This document shows, piece by piece, positions 2,034 through 45,682 of a stretch of DNA of 64,000 bases. How positions within the stretch are numbered: position 1 is the first letter of the stretch; every line of letters begins with the position of its first letter. A program made the translations under genes and the position numbers. Where the stretch lies: positions 62,001-126,000 of the forward strand of contig NIVC01000013.1 of the NCBI GenBank assembly GCA_002269645.1, in the 5' to 3' direction. The DNA is from Macrostomum lignano. Its lineage: Eukaryota. Below the pieces are notes generated by a model. That model did not search any database and was not told the origin of the DNA. It worked only from the letters and a program-made list of their open reading frames with translations.

Positions 2034-5000
2034 TTAATTGCTGCTTAGCTTGTAGAAGCGGTTTTTCCTGGCCCAGCAACTGAGGATCTGGGAGGCTGGC
2101 CCAGCAACTGGGGATCTGGGAGGCTGGCCCAGCAACTGGGGATCTGGGAGGCTGGCCCAGGAACTGAGGATCTGGGAGGCTGGCCCAGCAACTGAGGATC
2201 TGGGAGGCTGGCCCAGCAACTGGGGATCTGGGAGGCTGTCAGCGCAGCAACTGGGGATCTGGGAGGCTGGCCCAGCAACTGGGGATCTGGGAGGCTGGCC
2301 CAGCAACTGGGGATCTTGGAGACTGGCCCAGCAACTGGGGATCTTGGAGGCTCGCCCAGCAACTGGGGATCTGGGAGACTGGCCCAGCAACTGAGGATCT
2401 GGGAGGCTGGCCCAGCAACTGGGGATCTGGGAGGCTAGCCCAGCATTGGGATCTGAGAGGCTCGCCCAGCAACTGTGGATCTGGGAGGCTGGCACAGCAA
2501 CTGGGGATCTGGGACACAGACCCGCACGCCAATTACCTGCCAGCTCCGCCCTGTCGGAGCTGCCAGCGCCCGCCGCCGCCGCCGCGCTGCCTGTGGCCGA
2601 TGAGATGCGGCACCTCCGCATCGGCAATCGCAGCTGCCGCTGCTGCCTCATCCGCAGCTTCGTCTCGCCGCATCTGCGCCTCCGTGATGCTCAGTGTGGC
2701 TCGTTTAACAGCCTCTCGCTCTCTGGCGTCGGCTTCAACGGCGGCCAGGTAACGCCTGGCCAGGTGGCTGTCGGCCGGCAGCCGCACCACAGGCTGGTTG
2801 CGCGAGTTGCCGCCACGGCGGGCCATGACGGTGAAGGCCACGGTGCCAGCAGCCGGAGCGTCAGCGGCTGGAGAATTGGAGGCACAGGCGACGGAATTCG
2901 GATCGCCGGAAGCGGACAGAAACCCGGGCGGGCCACCGACGCCGCCGCCGACGCCGCTGCCCACACCACCGCCGCCTTCCACAGCCAGAGTTCGTTCGAA
3001 AGCTCGAATGAATTCCTCGTCCTCCGGGCAGGCCATCAGCTCCGGCCTGGGCGACTGCCGCCGCTGGGGAGTCGCCGAGTTCGATGATGCTCTGTCGGCG
3101 TCGTCTTCGCCTTCCGGATTGTCACCGTCGGTGCCAGCGTCATCCCGACGATGATTCCGTCCACCGGAGCGTCGCTTCCCGCCGCCTCTCTCGTCATCTC
3201 CGTCCTCTTCATCATCATCATCGTCCTCATCGTCTTCGTCTTCAGTCGCTGACGTGCCCGAAGCTGTCGAGGTGGCACCTGCGGCGCCGGAGGCTTCTAC
3301 TATCGTGGTCAGCTGACCGCGAGCTGCTGTGTCGCTTTGCTGTTGAAGCTTGGCGGCCACGCGTTCTGCGAATCATTTGGGTTACCACTTGGGATTAATC
3401 AAGAGGGCAAGAGTTGCGGGCTCGTTCTCGTGCACGAGCCGCAAACTTAGAGCCAAGAGTCACGAGATCTGGGATCTGGGATTAGGGATTAAAAATATGG
3501 ATATATGATTAGGGACCTGGAATATGGGATTTAGGGATCTGGAATATGGGATTAGGGATCTGGAATATGGGACTTAGGGATCTGGAATATGGGATTAGGG
3601 ATCTGGAATATGGGATTAGGGATCTGGAATATGGGATTTAGGGATCTGGAATATGGGACTTAGGGATCTGGAATATGGGATTAGGGATCAATATGGGATT
3701 TAGGGATCTGGAATATGGGATTAGGGATCTGGAATATGGGATTTAGGGATCTGGAATATGGGACTTAGGGATCTGGACTATGGGATTAGGGATCTGGAAT
3801 ATGGGATTAGGTATCTTGAATATGGGATTTAGGGATCTGGAATATGGGATTAGGGTGCTGGAATATGGGATTAGGGATCTGGAATATGGGATTTAGGGAT
3901 CTGGAATATGGGATTTAGGGATCTGGACTATGGGATTAGGGATCTGGAATATGGGATTATGTATCTTGAATATGGGATTTAGGGATCTGGAATATGGGAT
4001 TAGGGTGCTGGATTATGGGATTAGAGATCTGGAATATGGGATTAGGGATTTGGAATATGGGATTAGGGATTTGGAATATGGGATTAGGGATTTGGAATAT
4101 GGGATTAGGGATCTGGAATATGGGATTAGGGATCTGCGATATGAGATAAGGGATTTGGAGATTTTCTTTTAGTGCCCCGGCAACTCCTCCAATTGATAAA
4201 AAACTTACCAAGCTTAGCAAGAAATGCTTTCTCCTGCTTGTCAACAAACAATCTAGCCTCTTGAAAATTATTTGCGTGCTTAAATTTCGGCCTCAAAGAG
4301 TCCACAGTCTCTGTGTAGAGATATTCGATATCTAAAGGAAACGGTCGATCCTCGCTAGACCAAACTAATTGTCGCCGTTTAGACCAATAATACTGCTGCA
4401 AGTAGAGCAGGTAGGCGTCCAGGCGCTTCTTATTAGAGCCTGTGTCGAAGTACTGCCCGCAAGTCTGCAACAGAACACACGACAGACGAATCCTGAGTAG
4501 ATGCTCGGGAGGATCAAGCGAAATGTAATCGGCTGCCGGAGGTGGAGAAGACTGCTCAGGAGCGGTAGGATCGGACAGGTCTACACCAAAGGATATAAAA
4601 GAATGCAAAGTATTAAATATCAGACCGCTCTCAACTAGGCAGTAGTTGTATAGCTCGCCCAGGTATCTGGAGCAAGCTATTCTGCGTTGATTCAATCGAG
4701 TCTCGTTAATCTCCATGCCGAGGCGAATGTCTTCGAGCACGTTGTCAACTACGGCTATGGCAACTGACGGTTGGTAGGGCGCTAGACCGGCCAGGACTGA
4801 GGCCAGACAGTGCACAGAGCTGTAGGGGATGCACCAGACGCTGGTGAAGCAGCGGACAGCAAATTGGGAGATTTCTGGATCAGTCCAGGGCAGCCGGAGG
4901 CACAGGTTCAGCACCTGGGGGTTTAAGGTGTTAGCATTTGTCTATCCTGTCTGTTTGGAATAATTCTTTCTCGATAAATAATTCCCCCTGAAAAAGATTC

Positions 5001-7327
5001 TCCATGCTAAATAATTCCCTATTGATTAATAATTCTCCATGCTGAATAATTCCCTATTGATTAATAATTCCCCATGCTGAATAATTCCCTGTTGATTAAT
5101 AATTCTCAATGCTGAATAATTCCCTATTGATTAATAATTCCCCATGCTGAATAATTCCCTGTTGATTAATAATTCTCCATGCTGAATAATTCCCTGTTGA
5201 TTAATAATTCTCCATGCGGAATAATTCCCTGTTGATTAATAATTCTCCATGCGGAATAATTCCCTGTTAATAAATAATTCTCCATGCGGAATAATTCCCT
5301 GTTGATAAATAATTCTCCATGCTGAATAATTCCCTGTTGATTAATAATTCTCCATGCGGAATAATTCCCTGTTGATTAATAATTCTCCATGCGAAATAAT
5401 TCCCTGTTGATAAATAATTCTCCATGCTGAATAATTCCCTATTGATTAATAATTCTCAATGCTGAATAATTCCCTGTTGATTAATAATTCTCCATGCGGA
5501 ATAATTCCCTGTTGATTAATAATTCTCCATGCGGAATAATTCCCTGTTGATTAATAATTCTCCATGCTGAATAATTCCCTGTTGATTAATAATTTTTCAT
5601 GCTGAATAATTCCCCTTGATAATTCTCCAAGTGAATAATTCCCTGTTGATTAATAATTCTCCATGCGGAATAATTTCCTGTTGATTAATAATTCTCCAAG
5701 CTGAATAATTCCCTGTTGATTAATAATTCTCCATGCTAAATTAATTCCCTGTTGATTAATAATTCTCCAAGCTGAATAATTCCCTGTTGATTAATAATTC
5801 TCCATGCTAAATTAATTCCCTGTTGATTAATAATTTTTCATGCTGAATAATTCCCCTTGATAATTCTCCAAGTGAATAATTCCCCTTACAAAATTACACA
5901 CACTATAAACAATGGTCCTCATCAAAGAATTCCCCAAATCCTTGTAAAACTCCAGCATTTCCACTAGCCGGGAGGTCCCGCCAGCACACAACGGGTGTGT
6001 CACCTTTTCAACGGTAGAATTGCACAGGTCCTTGAACAGCAGCCGTTGCAGGAACTGCATCATTGGCGGCAACAGGACTACTTTAGCTAATCGACGAGAG
6101 TTGGCGTCGGGCGGCGCCACAGAATAATAGGCATTTTCAATCATTGCTGATAGGCGTTCGTCTGTCACCATCTTGGTCTTCTTGTTCCACAGATTGCGCA
6201 GGTACACCTGAATTGTTGCCATGAAGCAGGGAAGAACAAGAGGCTCAGTCAGTCACTGACCAATCAGAGAGCACCGCAGGGTATTCAGTCAGTCACTGAC
6301 CAATCAGAGAGCACCGCAGGGTATTCAGTCAGTCACTGACCAATCAGAGAGCACCGCAGGGTATTCAGTCAGTCACTGACCAATCAGAGAGCACCGCAGC
6401 GTATTCAGTCAGTCACTGACCAATCAGAGAGCACCGCAGGGTATTCAGTCAGTCACTGACCAATCAGAGAGCACCGCAGGGTATTCAGTCAGTCACTGAC
6501 CAATCAGAGAGCACCGCAGGGTATTCAGTCAGTCACTGACCAATCAGAGAGCACCGCAGGGTATTCAGTCAGTCACTGACCAATCAGAGAGCACCACAGG
6601 GTATTCAGTCAGTCACTGACCAATCAGAGAGCACCGCAGGGTATTCAGTCAGTCACTGACCAATCAGAGAGCACCGCAGGGTATTCAGTCAGTCACTGAC
6701 CAATCAGAGAGCACCGCAGCGTATTCAGTCAGTCACTGACCAATCAGAGAGCACCGCAGCGTATTCAGTCAGTCACTGACCAATCAGAGAGCACCGCAGG
6801 GTATTCAGTCAGTCACTGACCAATCAGAGAGCACCGCAGGGTATTCAGTCAGTCACTGACCAATCAGAGAGCACCGCAGGATATTCAGTCAGTCACTGAC
6901 CAATCAGAGAGCACCGCAGGATATTCAGTCAGTCACTGACCAATCAAAGAGCACCACAGGCCGCTCAGTCAGTCACTGACCGATCAGAGAGCATCACAGG
7001 CCATTCCGTAATAAAACAAAGCAATTACGCACCTTAATTCGCAGGTGAGTCTCAGGTGTAGCATACAGATACCGACCACAGCTTTCCAATAGGGTGCAAG
7101 CCAATTCAATGCTGTGATGACTGAAATTAATTATTAACAATTTCAAATCAGCGGCCGCATCAGCCAAAGGAAACAGGCCGAATTTGACCAGCTCTCCGAT
7201 GAATCTGACAGTCTGTGGGGAGCGAGTGAATTTTGTTATCAATATTGTTTATTAGGCAATAAAATGATAGGAATTACAAAGTCTAAGACAGAATTACAGA
7301 CAGGCAGACAGCCAAACGGAAAGACAC

Positions 7328-7366
<39 letters not shown>

Positions 7367-7368
7367 GC

Positions 7369-7399
<31 letters not shown>

Positions 7400-7440
7400 C
7401 CAGCCAGACGGACAGACAGATAGACAGACAGACAGACAGC

Positions 7441-7473
<33 letters not shown>

Positions 7474-10400
7474 AGCCAGACGGACAGACAGACAGACAGA
7501 CAGCCAGACGGACAGACAGATAGACAGACAGACAGACACAGACAGGCAGACAGACAGAGCAAGCGGCACCAACCTTCAGCTTGGACTCCAGGTTAGTGTG
7601 GTCTTTCTTATGAAAAGCGTGCCGAAAGTCGGCCTGCAGCCGCTGCCGCAGCTCCTGGGCCACCTCGGGCGCCACGGGCTGCAGCACGGCTGCCAGACGG
7701 GCGTAGAACGGCAGCAGGTCGGACCTGCTGCGGTGCACAGTGAGCATGGCGTGACTCAGGCGCCTCCTGGCGGATTTGGAATTCAATCCGGTGGCAAATT
7801 CCACAGCCGCTTTATCGATCATGTCGCGATTGACAAGAGTTGGCAGCGCGGTCAGGAACTGCTCTAGCTGAGCCTGGCGCTGAGTCTGAGTCTGAGCAGG
7901 AGCAGCAGGTTGGCTAGTTAATACAGCAGATTCTTCATCGTCATCTTGCTGAGCCGTGGCCGAGGTCGAAGTAGCGTCGGTAGTTTCGACACTGTCGGGC
8001 TCCGCAGGCGCTGCCGCCGCAGCCGCTTGCTGCTCTTCCTCTTCGAGCAGTTCTCGTTCTAAAGCGGCTTCATCGTCTTCCGCTGCTTCCGTGTCTGCTT
8101 CTGCAGATTCTGATTTCTGTTCGGCTTTGCTTTGATCTTCTTGACGCTCGGTTTCTTCTTCTTTTAGCGCGATTGAATCTTCCGTTTTCTTCAGGTTTAT
8201 TTAATGAAGAGTCAATAAAGTAGTTTTGTTATATGTTGCTACTATTAGTCGCATTGCTATATTGCTACTATTAGTACTTTTGCTATATTGCTATTATTAG
8301 TAGCCTTGCTATATTGCTACTATTAGTAGCCTTGCTATATTGATACTATTAGTACTTTTGCTATATTGCTACTATTAGTAGCCTTGCTATATTGATACTA
8401 TTAGTACTTTTGCTATATTGCTACTATTAGTAGCCTTGTATGTTGCTACTATTAGTAGCCTTGCTATATTGATACTATTAGTACTTTTGCTATATTGCTA
8501 CTATTAGTAGCCTTGTATGTTGCTACTATTAGTAGCATTGCTATATTGCTACTATTAGTAGCCTTGCTATATTGCTACTATTAGTAGCCTTGTATGTTGC
8601 TACTATTAGTGGCATTGCTATATTGTTACTATTAGTAGCCTTGCTATATTGCTACTATTAGTAGCTGTGCTATATTGCTACTATTAGTAGCTGTGCTATA
8701 TTGCTACTATTAGTAGCTGTGCTATATTGCTACTATTAGTAGCCTTGCCATATTGCTACTATTAGTAGCCTTGCTATACTGCTACTATTAGTAGCATTGC
8801 TATATTGCTACTATTAGTAGCATTGCTATACTGCTACTATTAGTAGCTTTGCTATATTGCTACTATTAGTGGCATTGCTATACTGCTACTATTAGTAGCT
8901 TTGCTATATTGCTACTATTAGTAGCATTGCTATACTGCTACTATTAGTAGCTTTGCTATATTGCTACTATTAGTGGCATTGCTATACTGCTACTATTAGT
9001 AGCATTGCTATATTGCTACTATTAGTAGCATTGCTATATTACTACTATTAGTAGCATTGCTATATTGCTACTATTAGTAGCATTGCTATGTTGCTACTAT
9101 TAGTAGCTTTGCTATATTGCTACTATTAGTAGCATTGCTATATTGCTACTATTAGTAGCATTGCTATATTGCTACTATTAGTAGCATTGCTATATTGCTA
9201 CTATTAGTAGCTTTGCTATATTGCTACTATTAGTAGCATTGCTATATTGCTACTATTAGTAGCCTTGCTATATTGCTACTGGCCTATACCTGCTTAGTAG
9301 CAGCAGCAGCCGCAGCAGCAGTCTCCATTCGCTCTTTGGCCTCTCTAACCAGCACTTCCGGCAGCATTGGCCTCAAATCTGGCAGAGTTTCGTAGAAAGC
9401 TCTCGCGTCCTCGTCTTCAAAGCGGCCTAAAACGCCCGAAGCTTCGTCCAGGCCTGGAAGGCGACCCGCACCGGCCGGGGCAGACAGAGAGTCGGCCACG
9501 GCTCGCTCCTCTTCGTCCAGATCGTCCGATTCGATTGGCGGCAGTTCGGGAGCTGGCTCGCCGAGTAAGTTGCACAGCTGGTTGGCCAGGCCTGGCAGTT
9601 TTAATAGGGATTTCTACCGTTTTATATGGGGATTTCTACCGCTTTATATGGGGATTTCTAGCGTTTTATACTCGTATGGGGATTTCTACCGTTTTATATG
9701 GGGATTTCTACCGCTTTATATGGGGATTTCTAGCGTTTTATATGGGGATTTCTACCGATTTATGAGGATTTCTACCGACTTATATGAGGATTTCTACCGA
9801 TTTATGAGAATCTCTACCGATTTATATGGGGATTTCTACCGTTTTATATGAGGATTTCTACCGATTTATATGGGGATTTCTACCGTTTTATATGGGGATT
9901 TCTACCGATTTATGAGGATTTCTACCGACTTATATGAGGATTTCTACCGATTTATGAGGATTTTTACTGATTTATGAGGATTTCTACCGATTTATGAGGA
10001 TTTCTACCGACTTGTGTTGAGTGAATCAAGAAAAACAAAATTTATTGCAATTGTCACCCACCAAGCAATCTATCAACTTCTTTTTTGCACGTCTCAAAAG
10101 CGTCGCGCCTGTCCTGACTGAGCTCGCCTTTACTATTCAAAATTCGCCGATTCTGCCGGTCCATCCGACTCAACTCGCCAGCCCGGTCGGTCAGTGAGCT
10201 GGTCAACCTTTTGCCGTATTCGGTTAACAATCGATAGAACGGACGCTTGGTCTCGGCTTCTAAATAGTGAGTACCGCGAGGCAACTCAACTGCTGGGCTG
10301 CACCGGTTGGCCAGTGCGAGTTTTCTAGTTGGCAGCTGGCCAATAAGCGAGTCGCCAGAGTGGCTCAACAGGTGACAGACTAAACCGCAGTGAGAGAAAT

Positions 10401-11940
10401 CCGCGTCATTCAATGTCAGAGCTTGCAAGCATTGGCCAAGCAGCTTCAAAGCTGGCATTGTTGGTAGAACTTTTGCGAATATTAAATCCGAATATAGACG
10501 GAGATCGACACGTAGTTTAGCCAGATTCCACTGGTTCTGCTGGGACTCTTTCGGTTGTTGCTGCTTTGGCAGCAGAACCTTTCGCCAAGCATCCAGCGCC
10601 AATTCAGCGTATTCGGCATAGTTTCTAGCTAGTAAGCAATTAATTAGCAAGATGCTTGATAGATCGCTAGATTTCAACTTGGCTTCTAACAGTGCATTGG
10701 CAACTTCTTCAAGGTATTTAGACAGGTTTAGGGCTGGCAGTTCTCGCATGATGGCGTCTCGCTGAGATTCCGTGTAGTTTTTCTGCGGGATTTGAGCAAT
10801 TGATGGAGTTTGCTAATACCGCTAATTAACATGGAATTGCTTGTTAGTCTTTTAGGGGTCTGTTGGGCATCTCCACAAATCAGAGGCGACAGAGACAAGT
10901 TGCTGAGCTGCCAAGACTCAAATGGGGGGAGTTGCTGAGCTGCCGAGACTCAAATGGGGGGGAGTTGCTGAGCTGCCAAGACTCAAATGGGAGGAGTTGC
11001 TGAGTTGCCAAGACTCAAATGGGGGGGGGAGTTGCTGAGTTGCCAAGACTCAAATGGGGGGAGTTGCTGAGTTGCCAAGACTCAAATGGGGGGGGGGAGT
11101 TGCTGAGTTGCCAAGACTCAAATGGGAGGAGTTGCTGAGTTGCCAAGACTCAAATGGGGGGAGTTGCTGAGTTGCCAAGACTCAAATGGGGGGAGTTGCT
11201 GAGTTGCCAAGACTCAAATGGGGGGAGTTGCTGAGTTGCCAAGACTCAAATGGGGGGAGTTGCTGAGTTGCCAAGACTCAAATGGGGGGGGAGTTGCTGA
11301 GTTACCAAGACTCAAATGGGGGGGGGAGTTGCTGAGCTGCCAAGACTCAAATGGGGGGGTTGCTGAGCTGCCAAGACTCAAATGGGGGGGGGAGTTGCTG
11401 AGCTGCCAAGACTCAAATAGGGTGCCGATATCTTAGGCTATAAAACATGATATCACGCATAGTTTATGCCTCCTGAACACGAACTCACCAGCTTCTTCAC
11501 AAAGGCGGTATTCCGTTTCAGACTGGAGTCATTCTTGGCGAATGGTGGAAAATCTGCGCACTCGCTAGGATTCTCGTTGCCTAGCAACAGAGCGTCCAAC
11601 TGGCCGTAACGAGTGGACAATTCAACGCGATATGCTTCCGATTCGGCCTTAAATAATTGCGTTAAAAACTTGTTAAAACCTTGTTTTTTTCTTACAATAC
11701 TACTAAATCGAGAAAAAAGTAAGTAGTAAGAAATGCTAATTTTTACAAACCATTTCTTCCTCGGATAAAGGATTACTTCCCGCCAGATCTGTTGCCGGCT
11801 TCTCCTTATCCGTTGCTTCATCTAGAAATTGAATTTATTAATTAACAAAATTAATGTACAATTTATTAATTTTAACCAATATTCATCAATAGCTTACTAC
11901 TGCTCTGCATTTGGTCAGCATTATCAACTTCTGTAGCCAT
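2034..11940 (-). CDS. UPF2: Regulator of nonsense transcripts 2 (three MIF4G domains plus C-terminal UPF1-binding region), about 1287 aa, 11 exons
   Basis: Exons 11898-11940, 11751-11821, 11489-11647, 10062-10782, 9290-9591, 7574-8188, 7033-7212, 6004-6207, 4209-4914, 2537-3365, 2034-2067. All GT-AG with consistent phases, 3864 nt total. Motifs [61 protein letters not shown] and FTVMARRG match UPF2. Confidence 0.97.
2068..2515. repeat. 28-bp minisatellite GGGGATCTGGGAGGCTGGCCCAGCAACT in last UPF2 intron
   Basis: About 16 tandem copies; the last unit supplies the acceptor CCAG. Confidence 0.95.
3470..4160. repeat. 21/22-bp minisatellite GGATCTGGAATATGGGATTAG in UPF2 intron
   Basis: Tandem repeats read directly. 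Confidence 0.95.
4975..5885. repeat. 35-bp minisatellite AATTCTCCATGCTGAATAATTCCCTGTTGATTAAT in UPF2 intron
   Basis: Tandem repeats read directly. Confidence 0.95.
6246..6995. repeat. 40-bp highly homogeneous minisatellite TCAGTCAGTCACTGACCAATCAGAGAGCACCGCAGGGTAT in UPF2 intron
   Basis: About 18 near-identical copies. Confidence 0.97.
7300..7560. repeat. (GACA)n microsatellite in UPF2 intron
   Basis: Read directly. Confidence 0.95.
8232..9280. repeat. 26-bp minisatellite with internal palindrome TGCTACTA-T-TAGTAGCA in UPF2 intron
   Basis: Tandem repeats read directly. Confidence 0.95.
9606..10012. repeat. 20/22-bp minisatellite GGGATTTCTACCGTTTTATATG in UPF2 intron
   Basis: Tandem repeats read directly. 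Confidence 0.95.
10899..11418. repeat. About 32-bp minisatellite GAGTTGCTGAGTTGCCAAGACTCAAATG(G)n with variable poly-G, in UPF2 intron
   Basis: Tandem repeats read directly. Confidence 0.95.
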
Positions 11941-12499
11941 GGAAATTTAGCTCATTGGAGTAGCTGGTTGCAGTATTGTTTTATTGTATATAATGTTAGT
12001 GCGGCGCTTTCCTGCTGAAAAGTACATAGAAACAGATACACACATCGCAGTTTTAGTATAGTGGACTAGCACTCTTAGCCCCCCTTTGGGTTGGTGTAAT
12101 ACAAAACTTAGCTTAAATAAATAAGGCTACCCCCAAAAAATGTCAATACTACTAAGCAGTAGTTGGCAGTAGTATCGCTGAATAAATTATAGAGATTTTA
12201 TTATTATTGCATCACCAAAGAAGTTTGCGCATTTTAAAATTCGCGGAATACATAAAATTTTAGTTTAACAAAAACCGTATATACCACGATACGCAAAAGT
12301 TAGAAGAAAGACAAAATAAATACAATAGGTCGGCTTATTTATTGACCGAATTTCTGTTTTTTAGGGGGTTCGCACCGCAAGACACAGCTGGATAAACTGT
12401 TTATAAGACAGAAAAGCATTTTATTACGGCAAATAGTTTATAAAGCCGGTTTGGCCTGGATATTTTAATAAAAAATCGATTAAAAATAGAGTTTCAGAT

Positions 12500-13738: not shown

Positions 13739-13827
13739 ACGAAACCCTTACGGCCCCAGCTGCTTAAATTTTCATGACGACGTTCGCCCAGATATATTGA
13801 AATTAGTTACAGAGCATTATCCCAAAA

Positions 13828-31526: not shown

Positions 31527-31745
31527 ATGATGCCATTTTTGAAGATACAGTGCCACTTATTGGAGAATGTGATGCCATTTTTGAAGATACAGTGCCACTT
31601 ATTGGAGAATGTGATGCCATTTTTGAAGATACAGTGCCACTTATTGGAGAATGTGATGCCATTTTTGAAGATACAGTGCCACGTATTGGAGAATGTGATG
31701 CCATTTTAGAGGATACAGTGCCACTTATTGGATATGATGCCATTT
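31527..31745. repeat. 42-bp minisatellite TGATGCCATTTTTGAAGATACAGTGCCACTTATTGGAGAATG (degenerate copies to about 31950)
   Basis: About 5 copies read directly. Confidence 0.9.
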
Positions 31746-33755: not shown

Positions 33756-33894
33756 AGGATTTATTCCCGTTTTTCTTTGGAATTAACTTCAATCAACATG
33801 AAAAAACATGGTCTTGAGATATTTACAAAGATAATAATTTAACTTTGTCACTGTTACTTCCACAAACATAAAAATACTAAACAGGGAGCCACAT

Positions 33895-34925: not shown

Positions 34926-35451
34926 CGCTATACTACATAAGCTGACATAGGAGAAAAATTTGAGACAAAAACACAAATAGAATAATAAGTACAAATTAGA
35001 GTACAGACGCAGCAGATGCAATTTATTATTGAATGCTAATGTTTTTCGATTCTTGCTACGCTTAAGCAATGTCATTCATGGAAATTTGGGCGTGGGAGGA
35101 AACAAACTCTGCAAGAATGAAAAAATCAATACTATAGGACGTTACAGAGAACTTTTATAAGCTAGCACAATCTCTAGCTACAATATATCAGATTTCGCAT
35201 TGTTTCACGCGCGACATGTTCAATATAATGTCGCATAGAAACACGAACAATGAACAGGAATTTCAATGTCTTAATACTCTGAAGCTTTAACACTGCTAAA
35301 GAAAAATGCACGTTTGCACAGCTGATCAAGCCTTCCAAAGACAATGCTTTCTACCATATTTATATATTCCCTGCTATTCAAACTGTAGAACGTAACTAAA
35401 TGAAAGCACTGTTTATTACACAAAAGCTATGCTGAAATTTCAAGAAAAATT

Positions 35452-36318
35452 CTCAGCATCTAGATTGGGATTCTATAGCATGTAGATTGAGACCCTATAT
35501 AGCATCTAGATTGGGATTCTCAGCATCTAGATTGGGATTCTCAGCATCTAGATTGGGACTCTCAGCATCTAGATTAGGATTCTCAGCATCTAGATTGGGA
35601 TTCTCAGCATCTAGATTGGGATTCTCAGCATCTAGATTGGGATTCTCAGCATCTAGATTGGGATTATATGGCATCTAGATTGGGTTTCTCAGCATCTAGA
35701 TTGGGATTCTATAGCATCTAGATTGGGATTCTCAGCATCTAGATTGGGATTCTATAGCATCTAGATTGGGATTCTATAGCATCTAGATTGGGATTCTATA
35801 GCATCTAGATTGGGATTCTATAGCATCTAGATTGGGATTCTATAGCATCTAGATTGGGATTCTATAGCATCTAGATTGGGATTCTATAGCATCTAGATTG
35901 GGATTCTATAGCATCTAGATTGGGATTCTATAGCATCTAGATTGGGATTCTATAGCATCTAGATTGGGATTCTATAGCATCTAGATTGGGATTATATAGC
36001 ATATAGATTGGGATTCTATAGCATCTAGATTGGGATTCTATAGCATCTAGATTGGGATTATATAGCATATAGATTGGGATTATATAGCATCTAGATTAGA
36101 ACTATTTGCATCTAGATTGGAACTCTTTGCATCTAGATTGGGATTCTATAGCATCTAGATTGGGATTATATAGCATCTAGATTAGAACTATTTGCATCTA
36201 GATTGGAATTCTTTGCATCTAGATTGGGATTCTATAGCATCTAGATTGGGATTATATAGCATCTAGATTAGAACTATTTGCATCTAGATTGGAATTCTTT
36301 GCATCTAGATTGGGATTA
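35452..36318. repeat. 22-bp minisatellite TAGCATCTAGATTGGGATTCTA
   Basis: Tandem repeats read directly. Confidence 0.95.
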
Positions 36319-36411
36319 TTACCTAGTAGTTTGGGGATTCTTTTAAAATTTTAGATTCCAATTTTTATTGTATGTTTTTAAGCCCTTTAAACCGCAATGC
36401 TTGGGTATTGG

Positions 36412-37626
36412 TTAAAACTGCGGTCTCAAAGGCATGCTAGGCCAATAAACTGGCCTATTAGCTCCGGAATCGCAGGCTTGATCGAATCGCATCTGCATAG
36501 CAGTCTCCATGCCTTGAATAATGGCAGCGTGACGGCCGTACAGCCGGCGCATATCAATAGTCCGCTCTAAGCCTGGCTGCACTGTTGGCGGCAAACTATT
36601 GGCTAGCAACCCGGAGCTCGATGCAACAGTCTCCGTCGGTCCGTCATCGTTGCCATTCGGTTGGCGAGCTCCGCCACTTGCAGCATCTCGTCGATGTCTG
36701 TGAGCTTCTGACTGTCTGAGAAACTCTGCGTAGCCTTCGTCTAAGTGCAACAAATCTTCTTCTTCTTCTTCAGCAGCTGGCTTTTCTTTTTCTTCGACAT
36801 CAATTTGACCATAAACATCAAGGCCATCTACATTGCCAGAACCAATCTGATCAGCACTACGCCGCTCGGCAAGTAAACGAGCATACTCAACTAACACCGG
36901 AGAGTCTAAACCAGCTTTTCTTTCAGAGCAAACTGTCAACAATCTTAAACGGGTTTCGTATAGAGCGGCAATTCGTTCTGTTAGACGATTAATTGATATT
37001 TGATGCTCGTTATAGCGGTTCTCTGCGTCTATTAAACTGCGTCTTAAATCCGCTTGTTGTTGACTAATATGAGAATCTGTAGCATTCAGCCTACTATTAG
37101 TAGCGCTTGCATTTGAGGCGTCTCTCAGTAGCGTAGCGGGGCGGCTGTTACGCCAAACGGTACAATAGTTTGACCAGAAATTGTTAAAACGAGTACAAGA
37201 TTGCGGATGCCATGAAGTCGCCATAGTTGTTCTGAAAAATGGAAATAGAGTAGAAATATTGTAGCACGCAGTCAAAATTGTAACTTTAATCAGCCTACTG
37301 CAAGTAGAAATACAAACATTTTACGCATAAAAAATGAAAAATAAGAAGAGAGCACGTGAGGCAAAATCATTAGTAAAATGCGAGAAGAATTTACTGTTTG
37401 AAAGCTAATTTATTCAACTTGAGTAGATAATTTTTTGCTTGCGTACAGTGCAGCTACAAAACTTTGAGTTATAGTGAACTCGTACGGAACTCTTAACACA
37501 GTCTAAATTCTTCACTGACCTTTGAGCCCTCTTGCCTCGATCTTCACCCCGGCCTAAGTAGAAAGATAAGAAATTCAGAAATTTTATATTAAGAAATCAC
37601 AAGAGGTTGAGAATCAACCTACCGGG
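36412..37626 (-). CDS. GEMIN8: Gemin8-like SMN complex subunit; main exon 36412-37231, candidate upstream exons 37520-37553 and 37623-37626
   Basis: N-terminal W...FWSNY and C-terminal MRRLYGRHAAIIQGMETAMQMRFDQACD...PVYWPSMPL match Gemin8. First genomic in-frame ATG after the acceptor is 37224. Confidence 0.82.
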
Positions 37627-37839
37627 CTTGAATAAACAAATAGACAGGAGAGAAAAACTGAACACAGTGCATATGAATACCAAAAGTCACCAAGGGTTCA
37701 ATGGTCATAGAATCGGGTTATAGGTGAACAAAAAACACATGGCATTGCTCGGTTTGAACCGAACGCATTCAGTACAACTGACCCACATGACTCAGCGCTT
37801 TTTTATGCCTGGCTTAGTACAACTGATTTATTGAGCAAA

Positions 37840-39423
37840 TTACTTAGAAGCGGCAGTCTGATTGAAGCCAGACTCGATAGAATCAGAACCAGCCTGATGA
37901 TCAGATGCCTGAGGCCGGATCTCGTAATTAGCTAACACCACCTTAGACCTGAACGGCTCAATAAAGTCGCCTCGTAAACCAATATAGTGTACGCGACTTG
38001 TCTCGCCGCCTGCGTTGCTTGATATGTGAATTGACAGATGGCTGACCTGCAATATACAGGTGGGATTAGAAGATTAACACTGTATTATAATGTCTATAAT
38101 AATAACATTTTAGGTAGGTCCGTGAAAATGCTACATCTACATAAATTACTTTCAAAATCTACCCTATCCTACTCAGGCTACCACCAAAATCTACCCTAAC
38201 CTACTCAGGCTACCACCCAAATCTACCCTAACCTACTCAGGCTACCACCCAAATCTACCCTATCCTACTCAGGCTACCACCAAAATCTACCCTATCCTAC
38301 TCAGGCTACCACCAAAATCTACCCTAACCTACTCAGGCTACCACCCAAATCTACCCTATCCTACTCAGGCTACCACCCAAATCTACCCTAACCTACTTAA
38401 GGTACCACCAAAATCTACCCTAACCTACTCAGACTACCACCAAAATCTACCCTAACCTACTAAGGTACCACCAAAATCTACCCTAACCTACTCAGTCTAC
38501 CATCAAAATCTACCCTAACCTACTTAAGGTACCACCAAAATCTACCCTAACCTACTCAGACTACCACTAAAATCAACCCTGCCTAATCAGACTATACCGA
38601 AACCTACCCTAACCTAATCAGACTACCACTAAAATCAACCCTGCCTAATCAGACTATACCGAAACCTACCCTAACCTAATCAGACTACCACTAAAATCTA
38701 CCCTAACCTACTCAGACTACCACCAAAATCTACCCTAACCTACTAAGGTACCACCAAAATCTACCCTAACCTACTCAGGCTACCATCAAAATCTACCCTA
38801 ACCTACTTAAGGTACCACCAAAATCTACCCTAACCTACTCAGACTACCACTAAAATCAACCCTGCCTAATCAGACTATACCGAAACCTACCCTAACCTAA
38901 TCAGACTACCAGTAAAATCTACCCTAACATACTCAGGCTACCAAAATCTAGTCATGCCTCTAAAAATAAACGCAGTACTAACCGAACCAAACTTAGTGGG
39001 CTTCAAGCTATACTCGATAAGTCCATTAGGATCGGGACACAGTTCAATCTCTTGGTCAGCCTCGGCTCCAGCCTGGTCGAATGTCATAAATTCGCGATTA
39101 CGAAACAGACGAATTTTAGTAGGCCTCGATTCGGCTTCGCCGCCAATCAGCACAATACCTTTGACGCGTACAACCCCCGTGAAGGGCACATTAAACAACA
39201 ATTCTTCGTCGCAGTCGGATTCAACAAAACTATCCGAACTCAACCGCTCTGACCAAGGTCTGAACACCAGTTTACAAGATCCGGGCGTTGATTCGTTCAG
39301 GCATTGTAAATTTTCTGTGTCAATCATCTGATGCAGACAATATCTTGACGATTGATCGGTGCTGGCGTCAACATGAGAGTGACCATCGCAACAGCCGCCG
39401 CCGCCGTCTCCGCCGCAGGACAT
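37840..39423 (-). CDS. PITHD1: PITH domain-containing protein 1, about 215 aa, 2 exons
   Basis: Exons 38983-39423 and 37840-38046. Motifs LQCLNES, FVESDCDEELLFNVPFTG, HLSIHIS, YIGLRG. Confidence 0.96.
38155..38950. repeat. About 32-bp minisatellite CTACCCTAACCTACTCAGGCTACCACCAAAAT in PITHD1 intron
   Basis: Tandem repeats read directly. Confidence 0.93.
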
Positions 39424-39529
39424 GATTGATTCTTGCAATTCACCGTTTAGAAAACAATAATTACCTTCTGCTTTCTCTGAAAGATTATAAAACTGCGATT
39501 AGAACAGATCGTCATAACACACCCTACCC

Positions 39530-39905
39530 GATACTGTCAACCTTCAACCTACCTGACACTCTCAACCTGACACTGTCAACCTACCTGACACTCTTAACCT
39601 GACACTCTTAACCTACCTGACACTCAACCTACCTGACACTCAACCTACCTGACACTGTCAACCTACCTGACACTGTCAACCTACCTGACACTGTCAACCT
39701 ACCTGACAATTTCAACCTACCTGACACTCTTAACCTGACACTCTCAACCTACTTGACACTGTCAACCTACCTGATTCTCCCAACCTACCTGACACTCAAC
39801 CTACCTGATTCTCCCAACCTACCTGACACTCTCAATCTACCTGATTCTCCGAACCTACCTGACACTCTTAATCTACCTGATTCTCCCAACCTACCTGACA
39901 CTCTT
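39530..39905. repeat. Minisatellite CAACCTACCTGACACT(CT/GT)-type upstream of PITHD1
   Basis: Tandem repeats read directly. Confidence 0.9.
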
Positions 39906-40439
39906 ACCCTGCTGACAATTTCAATAATCTACCTCTACACTCCTATGTTAAATAATAACAAGTCTCACCTAGAAAATGTCCCACTTCCGATTCCAGATTG
40001 ATGCATATAACTGATAATTTCTCACCAAACAAGCCAAAAAGAAACAAAATTAAAAGCATTGTCAAAAAGCAAAGACTTTAAATTTATTTTAAAACTCAAA
40101 TTATATCATCGCCCTCGTGACAACAAAATTACGAGACAGTCAGTCATCTTAATAAAACGAAAAGCGAGCAAGCACATGCATAAATTCAAAATTGAATGGT
40201 GTCAATATGCCAGAGACACTACAACGAATTCTACGGACACTTTGCATCCGAGTGAAATAGCTGTCACCTAAATTTGACCTTCAAATCTCTCATTTATTAA
40301 ACTTTTTTTAAATAAATAATATGGCAAAGTTTCAGCAAAAGCAAGAAGCCGCTAAATTTTGGAACGAACGCAAAACAACACAAGACAGAAAGACTGACAC
40401 TAAGATAGACAATCACTGAGAGAGAGGGAGAGAGAGAGT

Positions 40440-40464
40440 GTGTGTGTGTGAGAGACAGACAGAC

Positions 40465-40513
<49 letters not shown>

Positions 40514-40526
40514 AAGGCAGAGAAAA

Positions 40527-40591
<65 letters not shown>

Positions 40592-40650
40592 AAGGTAGAG
40601 ACAGAAAGGTAGAGACAGAAAGGTAGAGACAAACAGACAGACAGACAGAA

Positions 40651-40709
<59 letters not shown>

Positions 40710-40770
40710 AAGGTAGAGACAAACAGACAGACAGACAGAAAGGTAGAGACAAACAGACAGACAGACAGAA

Positions 40771-40833
<63 letters not shown>

Positions 40834-40870
40834 AAGGTAGAGACAAACAGACAGACAGACAGAAAGGTAG

Positions 40871-40950
<80 letters not shown>
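40440..40950. repeat. (GACA)n microsatellite with GAAAGGTAGAGACA interruptions
   Basis: Read directly. Confidence 0.95.
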
Positions 40951-40953
<3 letters not shown>

Positions 40954-41772
40954 TGAAGAAGTTCCAGGAAGTCTATATAATCAAAAATCAACTTTAATGT
41001 AAACAATAATTTTCCAACAAAAAAGCAAAAGTACAGAAAAATGACTAATGAAATGATAGTGCAAAAAACGATCGCTTACTTAATACAACAGGAGTTGCTA
41101 TTACTGTATAGGTAAATAATTTCAGTAACTATTTTCACTAGATCACTGAATTTTCAACATATTGCGGCACACTGCAATTATCGACAAGTCGCATTGCTAC
41201 TAAAAAAATGAAACAAAAACTTTGCGAGGGAAATTTAAAATTGACGGAAGTCCAAACGATACAGAGTTGATAAAAATGACAAATAAGCTTTTTTACTTAT
41301 TTTAAATAATTAAATCACATTTTCCTGCCAAATGTCACCAACATGTACCGACATTTGCGCACACGTATTAAATACTGCAACTTATTGACTGACCTATCAT
41401 CTACTTATAGTAGCATAAACTCAATAAAATGACTAATGAAGAGACTTGTCTATGCTCAAAAGGAATTAAAATTGATGACATCAGCTAACTAAGTCAAATA
41501 TTACCTATGATAGACAAACTAAAGTATTTAGAAACAATGCCAAACAATATGATGTGCAAGCGGAACCTCTAGTCTAAGGTGTAGTCTAAATTTTAATACC
41601 ACACTGTGCCCTTCACCAATTCTATTACCATAAATCATACAGACTCGATTGTGCGACACGTTTGTACCACGGGTGCAACAGATGAGGATATTATTACATT
41701 ATAAAATATATCCTCTATAAACCTTCAACTAAGGAAGCATGTTTTTAACTAACATTTTTGAAATCGGAAAAT

Positions 41773-42290
41773 TAAGATCCCGAATCCCAACAACTAAGAT
41801 CCCGAATCCCAACAACTAAGATCCCGAATCCCAACAACTAAGATCCTGAATCCCAACAACTAAGATCCCGAATCCCAACAACTAAGATCCCGAATCCCAA
41901 CAACTAAGATCCCGAATCCCAACAACTAAGATCCCGAATCCCAACAACTAAGATCCCGAATCCCAACAACTAAGATCCCGAATCCCAACAACTAAGATCC
42001 TGAATCCCAACAACTAAGATCCCGAATCCCAACAACTAAGATCCCGAATCCCAACAACTAAGATCCTGAATCCCAACAACTAAGATACCGAATCCCAACA
42101 ACTAAGATCCCGAATCCCAACAACTAAGATCCCGAATCCCAACAACTAAGATACCGAATCCCAAAAACTTAAATCCCGAATCCCAACAACTAAGATACCG
42201 AATCCCAAAAACTTAGATCCCGAATTCCAACAACTAAGATACCGAATCCCAAAAACTAAGAGCTGGAATCCCAAAAACAGCCTAAATCCC
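41773..42290. repeat. 22-bp minisatellite AAGATCCCGAATCCCAACAACT
   Basis: Tandem repeats read directly. Confidence 0.95.
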
Positions 42291-42540
42291 AAAAACGAAG
42301 ATTCTACGGGAAGCTTAAAATTTAGAAATTAAAAATGATAAACGTTAGATATTTTATTCTAAAGTACCAAGGTATTGTTAATGTTAAATTTAAGATAAGA
42401 ACTCCCCGATCCCTAAAGATTAAAGTTTAAGTCTGAGCGAACAAAGAGTCACACGCGGTGATGTCAAGATGCATAGAAATGAAAACCACACACACACAAA
42501 AACGACCCCATCAAAGGTAAATTATGCACGCAGAGAATCT

Positions 42541-45500
42541 TTAAGCATTATTGGATCCGCTGCTACCGGAGCTGCTGCTGCCGCTGCCTCCCCCGCCAGT
42601 CTGCTGGTGCCGGTGCTGCACCGCGGCAGCCGCCCGCAGCTTCGGGAACAAAGTGTCCCAATCCTCCGTCTCCTCTTCGTCGTCCTCGTCTGAGAAAGCT
42701 GCACCGACCGACGCTCCGCTGGGTAGCAACGGTCTGCCTCGCTTAGCAACCGGAGACGAGGCTGAGGATGAAGATAGCGAAGGCTGCTGCTGCTGCGGAC
42801 CCTGCTGAAGCTGTACGAACTCCGGACTGATAGCCCTGGCAAAGGCCAGCCGTTTATCCCGAACCCAATGACTAATCCGGCCGTCGTGACCAAATACGGA
42901 AACAAATCCGGACACAAATCTGTTCGATTGCTGCTCCCATTTGCCAATTAGTTCGCGTCTGGTCTGCCCGATCCTGTCGCGCATTGTGCTGAATGTCTCC
43001 TAGGAGAGAGAGAGAGAGAGAGAGAGCGGAGGAAGTAGAAAGAAATCTTCTTACCAGAAAACCGGCAAAGTCATTATCTGTATTAAAGAATTAAAGAAAA
43101 ATTAATAAACTAGAAGTAGAAAATATCGTCTTGTAGAAAAAAATCTTGAAAAAAAGATCGATTTGCTACCATATATTAGCCAAGGCTTAGCGAACTAAGA
43201 GAAAACAACAGCTCAAAATAGATTAGCCATATCAGTCAAAGAGGCTTAGCGGCCTGGCTTTTAACAACCGAGCATTGATAATAAGTATCGCTAAATTGCA
43301 TAACGATATTTAATTATCTAATGAGCCAAGCTATACCTAATTCATAATACACTATCGCTAATTATCCAATTAGACTATCGCTAATTATCTAATAGACTAA
43401 TCACTGATTATCTAATAGACTAATCGCTGATTATCTAATAGACTATCGCTAATTATCTAATTAGACTATCGCTAATTATCTAATTAGACTATCGCTGATT
43501 ATCTAATAGACTATCGCTAATTATCTAATTAGACTATCGCTGATTATCTAATAGACTATCGCTAATTATCTAATTAGACTATCGCTGATTATCTAATAGA
43601 CTATCGCTAATTATCTAATTAGACTATCGCTGATTATCTAATAGACTATCGCTAATTATCTAATTAGACTATCGCTGATTATCTAATAGACTATCGCTAA
43701 TTATCTAATTAGACTATCGCTGATTATCTAATAGACTATCGCTAATTATCTAATTAGACTATCGCTGATTATCTAATAGACTATCGCTAATTATCTAATT
43801 AGACTATCGCTGATTATCTAATAGACTATCGCTAATTATCTAATTAGACTATCGCTAATTATCTAATTAGACTATCGCTGATTATCTAATAGACTATCGC
43901 TAATTATCTAATTAGACTATCGCTGATTATCTAATAGACTATCGCTAATTATCTAATTAGACTATCGCTGATTATCTAATAGACTATCGCTAATTATCTA
44001 ATTAGACTATCGCTAATTATCTAATAGACTATCGCTAATTATCATGAATCCAATACTCATTAAAAATAAAACAGCAACAATTCAGAACAACCCCAAGTTA
44101 CTCACCTTAACCTGCAGCTCCTTCTCCTTCATGTAGGATATGCCCAGCTCTTTCCTAGACAAGCCGCGCTTCAAATTCCTACGCAAATAGACGTCATAGT
44201 CCAGAATGATCCGAGCAATGACGTCAGTAGTAGAGATGCCTTCGGTTCGCTCTGTGGCAAGAAACATGCCCCGATCTTTAATCCATTTGTACACATCCTC
44301 GGTGTTGCCAGCTCCGTACGGTAGGTCGTCATGGGCGACAAAATCGATTTTATGCTTCGACAAGAAATCATAATCGTATGACCAGGGCGCGTCGCGTAGG
44401 ACTTCGTCGACGTAGCGACAATGTCGGACAGCTTCGTAGCGTTCAGATTCGCGCATAACAGTGTTGCCTTTCATTCTGCGTCAATAGGAGGGGGTAAACA
44501 TTAAATTTGTACAAAAATTATTTATACCACATAAAAACTTCGCCTTAACTATGGGTGTAACACCTCTTGTGCAATCCTAGCCATATTGTAATTTATTCTA
44601 CTGTGTATCTACAGGAGGGGGGCGTAGCCCAGTGGTCGACCGTTGCGCTCTGATGTGCCAAGCGGTCCAGGCTCGATTCCCTGTGCAGTCACATTAATTT
44701 GGGGGGCTAAATTGGAATCTCGGCTTGGCTCTGCTCGTGCAATTAACGTCATTGAGGGCCGACTTAGGATTGGGGCCGTTGTACACTCCTATGTGAATGT
44801 GTGCCTGTGCGTATGACTGCGTACGTATCCGCGCGCTTGTGTGCCTGCTCAGGGGAGTTGCCGGAATGGGCAGTAATGCCTCTCGCCGGTTGTGTGACAA
44901 TGTCGCTTAAAGTGCGACAGGGTGAACATAGCCTCCTGCCTTTAATCTACTGTCTGTCTACTGATATTTTCTTGAACTAAAACTACTAACAGTAGCGTAA
45001 AAGCAAAACTGCTAAACTGCAAATTTTCAGTTTGTTTTGTACCAATTAAAGTGGAAAAATCTATCCAGTTATGCTTGAGATATTAGTCACTGTCTATTTA
45101 GACATCTCTTAAGTCCTCACCTATGGGTATCCACATCGTTGCACACACCAACAATAAGATAGGCATTGGGGAAGGCCATCTTAGCTTGCATGAGTTGCCG
45201 GGCGTGACCAGAATGAAACATGTCGTAGATTCCGTCAGCGTAAACTCGCACTGGCCGGGCAGAGCGGCCAGCTTTAGCGTCTTCTAGCGACACTTTCACG
45301 CTGTAGTCAGTGGCTTGCAGGATTGCCTGAGCGTCTGGATCGTCGCTGAACGGAGCCGGACGAACATGATTGCAAGCCAGGGTTGCAGGCTGAAGTCGAT
45401 TCGGTGACTCCGTGCTGGCAGGCGTCACATTGGTTGGCAATTTTGCCGATTCAACAGATCGCACAGATCCTTCGCTGTCTCTATTATTAGCGTTGCTGTT

Positions 45501-45563
45501 TTTGTCGCTGCCGCTTAGTTGACGCTGTTCTACTAGTGGCGACGCGTGCTTTCGTTTTGGCAT
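42541..45563 (-). CDS. PCYT1: Choline-phosphate cytidylyltransferase (CCT), about 423 aa, 3 exons
   Basis: Exons 45121-45563, 44106-44475, 42541-42999. Motifs [57 protein letters not shown], amphipathic M domain. A/B paralog not assignable. Confidence 0.97.
43350..44040. repeat. 21/22-bp alternating minisatellite (AGACTATCGCTAATTATCTAATT / AGACTATCGCTGATTATCTAAT) in PCYT1 intron 2
   Basis: Tandem repeats read directly. Confidence 0.95.
44614..44945 (+). mobile_element. tRNA-derived SINE, copy 2 (intact head), in PCYT1 intron 1
   Basis: A-box-like TAGCCCAGTGG and B-box-like GGCTCGATTCC. Homologous to 20207-20540. Possible diverged 16-bp TSD at 44597-44612 / 44946-44961 (14/16 identical). Confidence 0.82.
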
Positions 45564-45672
45564 ATTTTCTTGGCTTTCTTTTAGTAGCAGAGAAATTTGA
45601 CAAGATATGAAATGAATTTTTTGCGGGAGAATAGCCAGTGAGCCAGTTCGTAAAGAGATTTTGTGAGCTAGA

Positions 45673-45682
45673 TTTATATATA
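45673..45682 (-). promoter_or_regulatory. TATA-like box (TATATATAAA) about 110 nt upstream of the PCYT1 ATG; candidate promoter of the cluster
   Basis: Minus-strand GGACTATATATAAATC in a short CpG-containing segment next to the CpG-depleted block. Confidence 0.55.

Follow-up and report, generated by a model that had tools for sequence, protein, structure and literature searches.

About 7% of the assembled transcripts of the flatworm Macrostomum lignano are precursors with several trans-splice sites, termed transcriptional units, which reach 51.6 kb and were cut into genes using peaks of spliced leader (SL) and poly(A) reads (Wudarski et al. 2017, PMC5730564). The species has a single 35-nt SL, CGGTCTCTTACTGCGAAGACTCAATTTATTGCATG, which is joined to acceptors with the motif [T/C]TNCAG; 30% of genes are trans-spliced and 15% lie in operons, in which conserved genes are enriched, and ~60% of the trans-spliced genes are found outside operons (Ustyantsev & Berezikov 2021, PMC8629364). 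Repeats inflate the spacers between trans-spliced genes, and the operon caller of the latter study subtracts them and applies a 1 kb cut-off, the largest operon holding nine genes (PMC8629364). Here we analyse a 64,000-nucleotide stretch of contig NIVC01000013.1 (assembly Mlig_3_7, GCA_002269645.1; contig positions 62,001 to 126,000, hereafter the window) in which eleven conserved genes lie head-to-tail on the minus strand, from 45573 down to 2533. The locus is very probably an operon-type cluster of SL-trans-spliced housekeeping genes, an organisation already described in this organism. There is about an even chance that two to four successive polycistronic units make up the cluster, which is somewhat likelier than one 43-kb unit.

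Compared with the known M. lignano operons, the cluster shares an SL ending in AUG, the acceptors, housekeeping gene content, repeat-inflated spacers and precursors with several trans-splice sites, and it has most of the defining features of that class. All 11 genes are adjacent on the same strand, and the downstream genes appear to be SL trans-spliced, judging from footprints of the SL in the assembly, annotated 5' ends and, at UPF2, the acceptor motif (for both features, PMC8629364). As for a single precursor from one promoter, a chimeric gene model joins PITHD1 to GEMIN8, and shared unit names join PCYT1 to PITHD1 and link other sub-blocks. The cluster differs in holding eleven genes, if it is a single unit, as opposed to nine, and in having two spacers at or above 1 kb when only the output of Tandem Repeats Finder (TRF) is subtracted. 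The initial annotation of the window had proposed a giant operon hidden by repeats that distance-based callers would miss. This concept is already established for the M. lignano genome: the published caller subtracts repeats (PMC8629364) and units of up to 51.6 kb are already annotated (PMC5730564), which contradicts the expectation that callers would miss the locus. Neither paper names this particular locus in its searchable text.

The SL2 operons of Caenorhabditis elegans likewise contain co-oriented housekeeping genes, including ribosomal protein genes, and their downstream cistrons are released when SL trans-splicing acts together with 3' end formation of the preceding mRNA. They hold 2–8 genes, use the specialised SL2 for downstream genes and have spacers of ~100 bp, whereas a single SL would serve every gene of the M. 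lignano cluster and its raw spacers measure 0.6–3.1 kb (0.25–1.7 kb without tandem repeats); lacking both SL2 and the short spacers, the cluster works alike and is a different subtype. In 24 parasitic flatworms, candidate operons contain at most nine genes and chimeric gene models were taken as a sign of polycistronic precursors (PMC12582326). The polycistrons of Schistosoma and Echinococcus described there also involve an SL with a 3'-terminal AUG and, in the chimeric models, spacers of up to several kilobases, but mostly comprise two genes with spacers of up to 300 bp. Kinetoplastid polycistronic units resemble the cluster in their long co-oriented runs of functionally unrelated genes and in SL trans-splicing. 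They comprise tens to hundreds of essentially intronless genes, every one trans-spliced, whereas the cluster has eleven genes, contains cis-introns (in PCYT1, PITHD1, DCPS, SREK1, NUB1 and UPF2) and lies in a genome in which ~30% of genes are trans-spliced; it is not a unit of the kinetoplastid type.

Genes were called from six-frame open reading frames (ORFs) combined with Pfam scans. This placed PCYT1, PITHD1, GEMIN8, DCPS, RPL37A, RPL36A, SREK1-like, PEX12, MED10, NUB1-like and UPF2 in this order on the minus strand, and the domain matches bear out the gene list, strand and order first proposed. The Pfam scan found no further domain-bearing ORF between the 11 genes and no plus-strand ORF with a domain match within the cluster, though non-coding transcripts of the opposite strand may exist there. 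The same uninterrupted gene order and strand recur among the called genes of two paralogous contigs, NIVC01001228.1 (copy A) and NIVC01000382.1 (copy B), both 97–100% identical to the window over non-repeat DNA, spacers and the 10 kb upstream of PCYT1 included. The PCYT1 protein PAA94164.1 is placed on NIVC01000013.1, to which the window corresponds in reverse orientation. In copy A, PCYT1, PITHD1 and GEMIN8 carry accessions PAA70547–70549 and PEX12 and MED10 carry PAA70554–70555, while in copy B PCYT1 and a PITHD1-GEMIN8 fusion are PAA84281–84282 and PEX12 and MED10 are PAA84287–84288. The accession numbers skipped in between equal the count of called genes, and hence the annotation appears to place no further protein-coding gene within the cluster. 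The claim that no gene intervenes is thus upheld by three paralogous contigs and a continuous accession series.

Co-orientation alone is not a significant observation genome-wide. The odds of about 1 in 1000 initially quoted for ten genes matching the orientation of the first are arithmetically right (2^-10), but ~36 runs of at least 11 co-oriented genes are expected under random orientation among ~72,846 genes. Such chance runs would suit a locus of independent genes, each driven by a separate promoter within the non-repeat DNA of its upstream spacer and each making a monocistronic, outron-bearing pre-mRNA that is then SL-trans-spliced, the shared strand being due to chance or inherited synteny. 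The large share of trans-spliced M. lignano genes that are not in operons favours this explanation. So does the 250–1700 nt of non-repeat DNA in each spacer, which is enough for compact promoters; the M. lignano genes tested so far are reported to be expressed correctly from upstream regions of up to 2 kb (PMC5730564).

We aligned the gene 5' ends across the window, copy A and copy B. A [T/C]TNCAG motif is present in at least one of the three copies at 10 of 10 downstream genes, at 0–74 nt from the coding start, which sharpens the earlier and correct remark that most downstream genes have pyrimidine-rich acceptors. The first exon nucleotides in the window, from PITHD1 to UPF2, are 39476, 37231, 33796, 31050, 29552, 28183, 23443, 20054, 18357 and 12014, which gives 5' UTRs of 2–74 nt. 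Intact acceptors precede PITHD1 (TTTCAG, 39482-39477), GEMIN8 (TTTCAG, 37237-37232), RPL36A (TTCCAG, 29558-29553), PEX12 (TTCCAG, 23449-23444), NUB1-like (CTTCAG, 18363-18358) and UPF2 (TTTCAG, 12020-12015). At six 5' ends, one copy retains YYCAG while another bears the last 3–7 nt of the SL (..TTGCATG). Reading window, copy A and copy B in turn, these are TTTCATG, TTTTATG and TTTTCAG at DCPS; TTGCATG, ATGCATG and ATTCCAG at RPL37A; ATTCCAG, ATGCATG and ATTCCAG at RPL36A; TTGCATG, TTTGCAG and TTTGCAG at SREK1; ATTCCAG, ATTCATG and ATGCATG at PEX12; and ATGCATG, ATGCATG and ATTCCAG at MED10. The footprints in the window, all on the minus strand, lie at 33797-33800 (DCPS, CATG, within TTTCATG at 33803-33797), 31051-31057 (RPL37A, TTGCATG), 28184-28190 (SREK1-like, TTGCATG) and 20055-20059 (MED10, GCATG).

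We also scanned every AG site of the three copies blindly, counting those with at least two substituted bases, each in agreement with the SL suffix; this returned eight sites on the sense strand, six at the gene 5' ends and two elsewhere, and none on the antisense strand. The methods of the Mlig_3_7 assembly report polishing by Pilon with Illumina DNA reads and STAR-mapped RNA-seq reads. On this basis, the exchange of YYCAG for the SL suffix between copies records SL trans-splicing, and the SL bases that replace true acceptors in the reference are almost certainly the product of polishing with SL-bearing RNA-seq reads. The effect is that the acceptor AG is lost from the reference and false genomic ATGs are made, one of which, at 20057, opens a 164-aa MED10 ORF in the window; others arise at PEX12 in copies A and B. 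Were the SL-like bases real germline sequence instead, through polymorphism or partial retro-copying, they would be uninformative on trans-splicing. Single A-to-T changes at position -2 are indeed common on both strands and behave as ordinary single-nucleotide polymorphisms (SNPs). However, a germline origin would have to account for six independent sites with 2–4 substituted bases, all fitting the SL suffix, at acceptors before start codons and without an antisense counterpart. The flanks of these sites are otherwise 97–100% identical between copies, just 3–7 nt are altered in situ with the introns kept, unlike in retro-copies, and the polishing procedure is on record; we consider this explanation highly improbable.

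Single-base CAG-to-CTG changes were also considered as partial footprints and were dropped as evidence, being as frequent on the antisense strand; one occurs at the GEMIN8 acceptor, which reads CAG in the window and copy B and CTG in copy A. The k-mer TTGCATG is observed 8 times against 11.5 expected, a count that is uninformative alone. No SL RNA gene was found within the window, and polishing footprints of poly(A), which would fix the 3' ends, were looked for without success. An AG site in the SREK1-PEX12 spacer (24333-24335, minus strand) is TAAGTAG in copies A and B and TAAGATG in the window, two bases having changed to those of the SL suffix; no obvious ORF follows it, and it could be an extra trans-splice site of a non-coding or alternative transcript, or chance.

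The annotation itself places 5' ends at the same sites. Partial coding sequences (CDSs) in NCBI begin 0–2 nt past the acceptor at PITHD1, GEMIN8, PEX12, MED10 and NUB1: that of PITHD1 begins 2 nt past CAG in all three copies and that of GEMIN8 in copy A begins 1 nt past the acceptor site, while in copy B the PEX12 CDS begins 'ADDAIAN...', the MED10 CDS opens exactly at CGT in ATTCCAG/CGT ('RESPSP...'; the stroke marks the splice junction) and the NUB1 CDS begins directly after CAG ('EEQELL...'). Taken with the footprints, these abutting 5' ends support SL trans-splicing at at least 9 of the 10 downstream genes. At UPF2, TTTCAG stands 74 nt upstream of the ATG and is kept in three copies, with no footprint, and the motif suggests that this gene is probably trans-spliced too. 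PCYT1 differs from the ten: its annotated 5' end abuts AG/CCAAG, following AAAG, and has no YTNCAG consensus.

For some of these genes the SL would supply more than a 5' end. PEX12 has no genomic ATG at its conserved N-terminus, which implies that the terminal AUG of the SL supplies its start; joined at 23443, this AUG is in frame (M-ADDAIANQ) and is the only plausible start. At NUB1-like (18357) the SL AUG is likewise in frame and probably gives the start M-EEQELLHK, whereas at MED10 (20054) it would put ten extra N-terminal codons (M-RESPSPAVA) before the genomic AUG.

Direct support for co-transcription is confined to PCYT1, PITHD1 and GEMIN8. In copy B, one gene model of 503 aa contains the PITH and GEMIN8 domains together. 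An exhaustive search of GT-AG combinations gave a single solution for this chimera, in which a donor at the last PITHD1 exon, TCTAA/GTAATT, overlapping the final codon and the stop, is joined in frame to the GEMIN8 trans-splice acceptor, CCCTTTTTCAG/AACAACTATGG; the reconstructed protein equals PAA84282.1 verbatim. The donor and acceptor sequences are also present in the window (37840-37848 and 37232-37237). Since the annotation is transcript-based, this model implies a precursor that held both genes. The fusion skips the PITHD1 stop, and may be a functional isoform or splicing noise.

Transcriptional units in the annotation were clustered at 95% identity and members share a name prefix (PMC5730564). 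In the window contig PCYT1 is Mlig001873.g2 and PITHD1 is Mlig001873.g3, and the same prefix covers PCYT1 in copy A (.g1) and the PITHD1-GEMIN8 fusion in copy B (.g5). A cluster that unites PCYT1-only and PITHD1-GEMIN8 units implies a longer unit containing both, across the largest spacer of the window. In copy A, PITHD1 and GEMIN8 are Mlig011471.g2 and.g3; PEX12 is Mlig029688.g5 and.g8, and MED10 is Mlig020247.g1 and.g4. Mlig029688 has at least eight gene models over the three copies, and the high gene numbers of PEX12 and MED10 suggest, from the naming, multi-gene units there. A reading of gN as position within the unit was dropped, the copy-specific numbers showing that gN enumerates genes across clustered units, and only shared prefixes were used as naming evidence. 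At the level of the annotation, PCYT1, PITHD1 and GEMIN8 appear to derive from a shared precursor RNA. UniProt also contains chimeric models of the earlier ML2 assembly, one joining the SREK1 tail, PEX12 and MED10 and one joining PEX12, MED10 and NUB1. They resemble ab initio merges with frameshifts and were given little weight, being compatible with read-through transcription yet too messy to serve as evidence.

Independent genes are difficult to reconcile with these findings. The chimeric mRNA requires a precursor with both PITHD1 and GEMIN8, PCYT1 and PITHD1 share a prefix, and the Mlig029688 models are spread over three copies. Three spacers, moreover, have just ~250–340 nt without repeats, 3' UTR included, and conserved genes of this class are enriched in M. 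lignano operons. In view of the PITHD1-GEMIN8 chimera and the common unit prefixes, we regard eleven separately transcribed genes as unlikely.

The distances between the genes agree with an operon-type cluster, with two exceptions. We measured each spacer from stop codon to next acceptor, 3' UTR included, and masked with TRF only, whereas the published caller takes its distances from transcript end to transcript end and removes RepeatMasker hits as well (PMC8629364). The PCYT1-PITHD1 spacer (39477-42540) is 3064 nt long, 1698 nt of it without tandem repeats. The corresponding figures are 608 and 608 nt for PITHD1-GEMIN8 (37232-37839), 2615 and 720 nt for GEMIN8-DCPS (33797-36411), 1062 and 835 nt for DCPS-RPL37A (31051-32112), 1201 and 336 nt for RPL37A-RPL36A (29553-30753), 1032 and 331 nt for RPL36A-SREK1 (28184-29215), 1874 and 1148 nt for SREK1-PEX12 (23444-25317), 2294 and 952 nt for PEX12-MED10 (20055-22348), 1205 and 252 nt for MED10-NUB1 (18358-19562), and 1813 and 599 nt for NUB1-UPF2 (12015-13827; 585 nt with the corrected UPF2 site at 12014). 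Tandem repeats account for 9,303 of the 16,768 nt in the ten spacers (12015..42540), or 55% (range 0–79%), and for 44% of the 43-kb cluster. The initial annotation had described the gaps as mostly repeat-filled introns; their inflation by tandem repeats is confirmed, but they are intercistronic spacers of 608–3064 nt. The repeat-adjusted length is 252–952 nt in 8 of the 10 spacers, and by the published 1 kb rule 8 or 9 of the 10 junctions would qualify. PCYT1-PITHD1 fails on distance alone, yet is the junction bridged by the prefix Mlig001873. The two largest repeat-adjusted gaps, PCYT1-PITHD1 and SREK1-PEX12, leave room for internal promoters. AATAAA or ATTAAA follows only five of the stop codons, 7–182 nt downstream.

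Whether the cluster is one unit or several turns largely on promoters. Upstream of PCYT1 no genes are called within 10 kb in any of the three copies, and a box, TATATATAAAT, at 45672..45682 on the minus strand, which precedes the annotated 5' end of PCYT1 by ~105 nt and is identical in all three copies, is a candidate promoter element. The upper limit first assigned to the cluster, 45682, is the position of this box and not a gene end; the lower limit, 2034, also needs revision, as the UPF2 stop is at 2533 and 2034 falls in a 28-bp minisatellite past the gene. A TATA-like box had further been ascribed to PCYT1 alone. This holds within ~150 nt of the 5' ends, but TATAWAW also occurs 313–357 nt upstream of GEMIN8 and RPL37A and farther upstream of DCPS and MED10, in four spacers altogether; counts of the motif are uninformative alone. 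Housekeeping promoters are usually TATA-less, and the absence of nearby TATA boxes therefore says little. Phylogenetic footprinting for internal promoters failed as an approach, the copies being too alike (97–100%) over non-repeat DNA.

One giant operon would have a single promoter upstream of PCYT1 and a ~43-kb precursor with all eleven cistrons. In its favour are the unbroken co-oriented run with consensus acceptors at all ten downstream genes, the 10-kb upstream stretch without called genes, the conserved TATA box near PCYT1 only, and the prefix Mlig001873, which spans the largest gap in the window's own contig. The annotation contains units of up to 51.6 kb and, according to its authors, units tend to break at repeat-rich operon spacers. 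On the other hand, at least four unit prefixes occur across the cluster, no published operon exceeds nine genes, two spacers reach or pass the repeat-adjusted cut-off of 1 kb, and missing TATA boxes are uninformative for housekeeping genes. We hold a single unit to be possible but less likely than not. Somewhat more likely is a chain of two to four units, or a hybrid operon whose longer non-repeat gaps contain internal promoters. Of the initial operon reading, the trans-splicing, the polycistronic organisation and the inflation by repeats stand.

Several points weigh against an operon-type cluster itself. Trans-splicing alone does not prove co-transcription, ~60% of trans-spliced genes being outside operons, and CAG-to-CTG changes such as those at GEMIN8 and NUB1 are indistinguishable from ordinary SNPs. 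The annotation divides the cluster into several unit-name groups, not one; and the meaning we attach to the prefixes is our reading of the methods text and not a documented rule. The PCYT1-PITHD1 spacer, at 1698 nt (~1.5 kb after a ~200-nt 3' UTR), exceeds the 1 kb cut-off, and SREK1-PEX12, at 1148 nt (about 1.0–1.15 kb), lies at or above it. Finally, a common promoter would require post-transcriptional yields to differ greatly between the ribosomal protein genes and genes of low abundance such as PEX12.

In the model we favour, an operon-type cluster, RNA polymerase II would initiate upstream of PCYT1, with the conserved TATA-containing region at ~45.68 kb as the candidate promoter, and transcription would continue through at least PITHD1 and GEMIN8. 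The downstream genes would likewise be made as multi-gene precursors; that these other neighbours are transcribed together, and from how many promoters, is inferred. Each downstream cistron would presumably be freed by upstream 3' end formation together with trans-splicing of the 35-nt SL onto [T/C]TNCAG, the terminal AUG of the SL serving as the start codon of PEX12 and NUB1. The kilobase spacers may be mostly neutral minisatellite expansions in intercistronic regions that were originally short.

All eleven genes have recognisable coding regions on the minus strand. PCYT1 (choline-phosphate cytidylyltransferase, 42541..45573; CTP_transf_like), the first gene, has three coding exons (ATG 45563, stop 42541) within ORFs at 45120-45707 and 44085-44480 and a C-terminal exon at 42544-42999, and its reconstruction is 100% identical to PAA94164.1. 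PITHD1 (37840..39476; PITH; PAA94163.1) has two exons in ORFs 38941-39498 and 37843-38073, with its ATG at 39423; its stop is overlapped at 37840..37848 by the cryptic 5' splice site TCTAA/GTAA that is cis-spliced to the GEMIN8 acceptor. GEMIN8 (36412..37231; ORF 36415-37320, ATG 37224; GEMIN8) is a single exon. DCPS (32113..33796; ORFs 32907-33782 and 32116-32676; DcpS and DcpS_C) has two. RPL37A (30754..31050; ORF 30757-31035; Ribosomal_L37ae) and RPL36A (L44e; 29216..29552; ORF 29219-29542; Ribosomal_L44) are single-exon genes. SREK1-like (25318..28183; ORFs 26952-28280 and 25321-26286) encodes an RRM_1 domain (E=1.8e-4) and an Arg/Ser-rich tail, with a (GACA)n array in its intron; we tentatively take it to be SREK1 from the RRM_1 match and the sequence of human SREK1. 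PEX12 (22349..23443; ORF 22352-23566; Pex2_Pex12 and RING) and MED10 (19563..20054; ORF 19566-20072; Med10) are single exons. NUB1-like (13828..18357; ORF 13831-18420) is multi-exon, with a ubiquitin-like region and UBA and UBA_7 domains, as is UPF2 (2533..12014; ORF 2536-12014; MIF4G and Upf2), whose ATG is at 11940. The PEX12 protein is 97% identical to an M. lignano protein from GCA_002269645.1, and an exact look-up found no matching protein record for the window ORFs of PEX12 and GEMIN8. GEMIN8 has an intact 270-codon ORF and an acceptor in the window, yet there is no protein model on record for NIVC01000013.1, whereas copies A and B have one.

Outside the genes, an AT-rich block without called genes (46000-56000, 26–35% GC) adjoins PCYT1 upstream and is colinear and 90–100% identical in the three copies; GC jumps to 40–58% at the start of the gene cluster. 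Beyond it, a plus-strand ORF at 56267-56635 has a weak CUB match (E=0.029, below the Pfam cut-off) and possibly belongs to a gene transcribed divergently from PCYT1, as one of its exons, in which case it would mark the upstream end of the co-oriented run. Just 2.5 kb of the window lie downstream of UPF2, where a plus-strand ORF at 139-447, which has no domain match, hints at a convergent gene. Assorted 20–46-bp minisatellites occupy nearly every spacer and intron, and long (GACA)n/(ACAG)n microsatellites recur at 7296-7558, 26962-27557, 40453-40951 and 57651-58043; those in UPF2 and SREK1 are intronic, another lies in the spacer between PCYT1 and PITHD1, and the last is outside the cluster. 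Same-family arrays stand at matching positions in the paralogous copies, which makes the arrays older than the duplication. Directly upstream of NUB1, a 29-bp array of 33 copies (18367-19319) has a unit that repeats the segment ATGACC(A/G)ATTATTCTGTAG of the NUB1 5' end, placing dozens of ATG codons and acceptor-like TTCTGTAG sites ahead of the real CTTCAG. In the trematodes Schistosoma japonicum and Clonorchis sinensis no shared synteny was found, with no PITH gene within 10 kb of PCYT1, and the comparison is uninformative; in both, PCYT1 spans 35–38 kb and has a co-oriented Robl_LC7 (roadblock/LC7) gene upstream of it, an arrangement not seen in M. lignano.

On its own, the cluster is one more operon-type locus in a genome where such loci are common and described, and it changes little. 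Two consequences are practical: comparing paralogous copies allows trans-splice sites to be read from Mlig_3_7 alone via the polishing footprints, and users of this assembly should be aware that the reference has lost acceptor AGs to overwriting and gained false genomic ATGs. PEX12 is a clear case, and NUB1 probably another, in which the terminal AUG of the SL serves as a required start codon. If the cluster does prove to be one ~43-kb operon of eleven genes, it would be the largest reported in any flatworm (the published maxima being nine), and would mean that read-through by RNA polymerase II and resolution by trans-splicing tolerate spacers 10–30 times the canonical ~100 bp. As a single unit, it would also offer, in a model capable of transgenesis, a convenient test locus for the limits on spacer length and repetitiveness, and for the question of how one promoter can serve both ribosomal protein genes and genes of low abundance.

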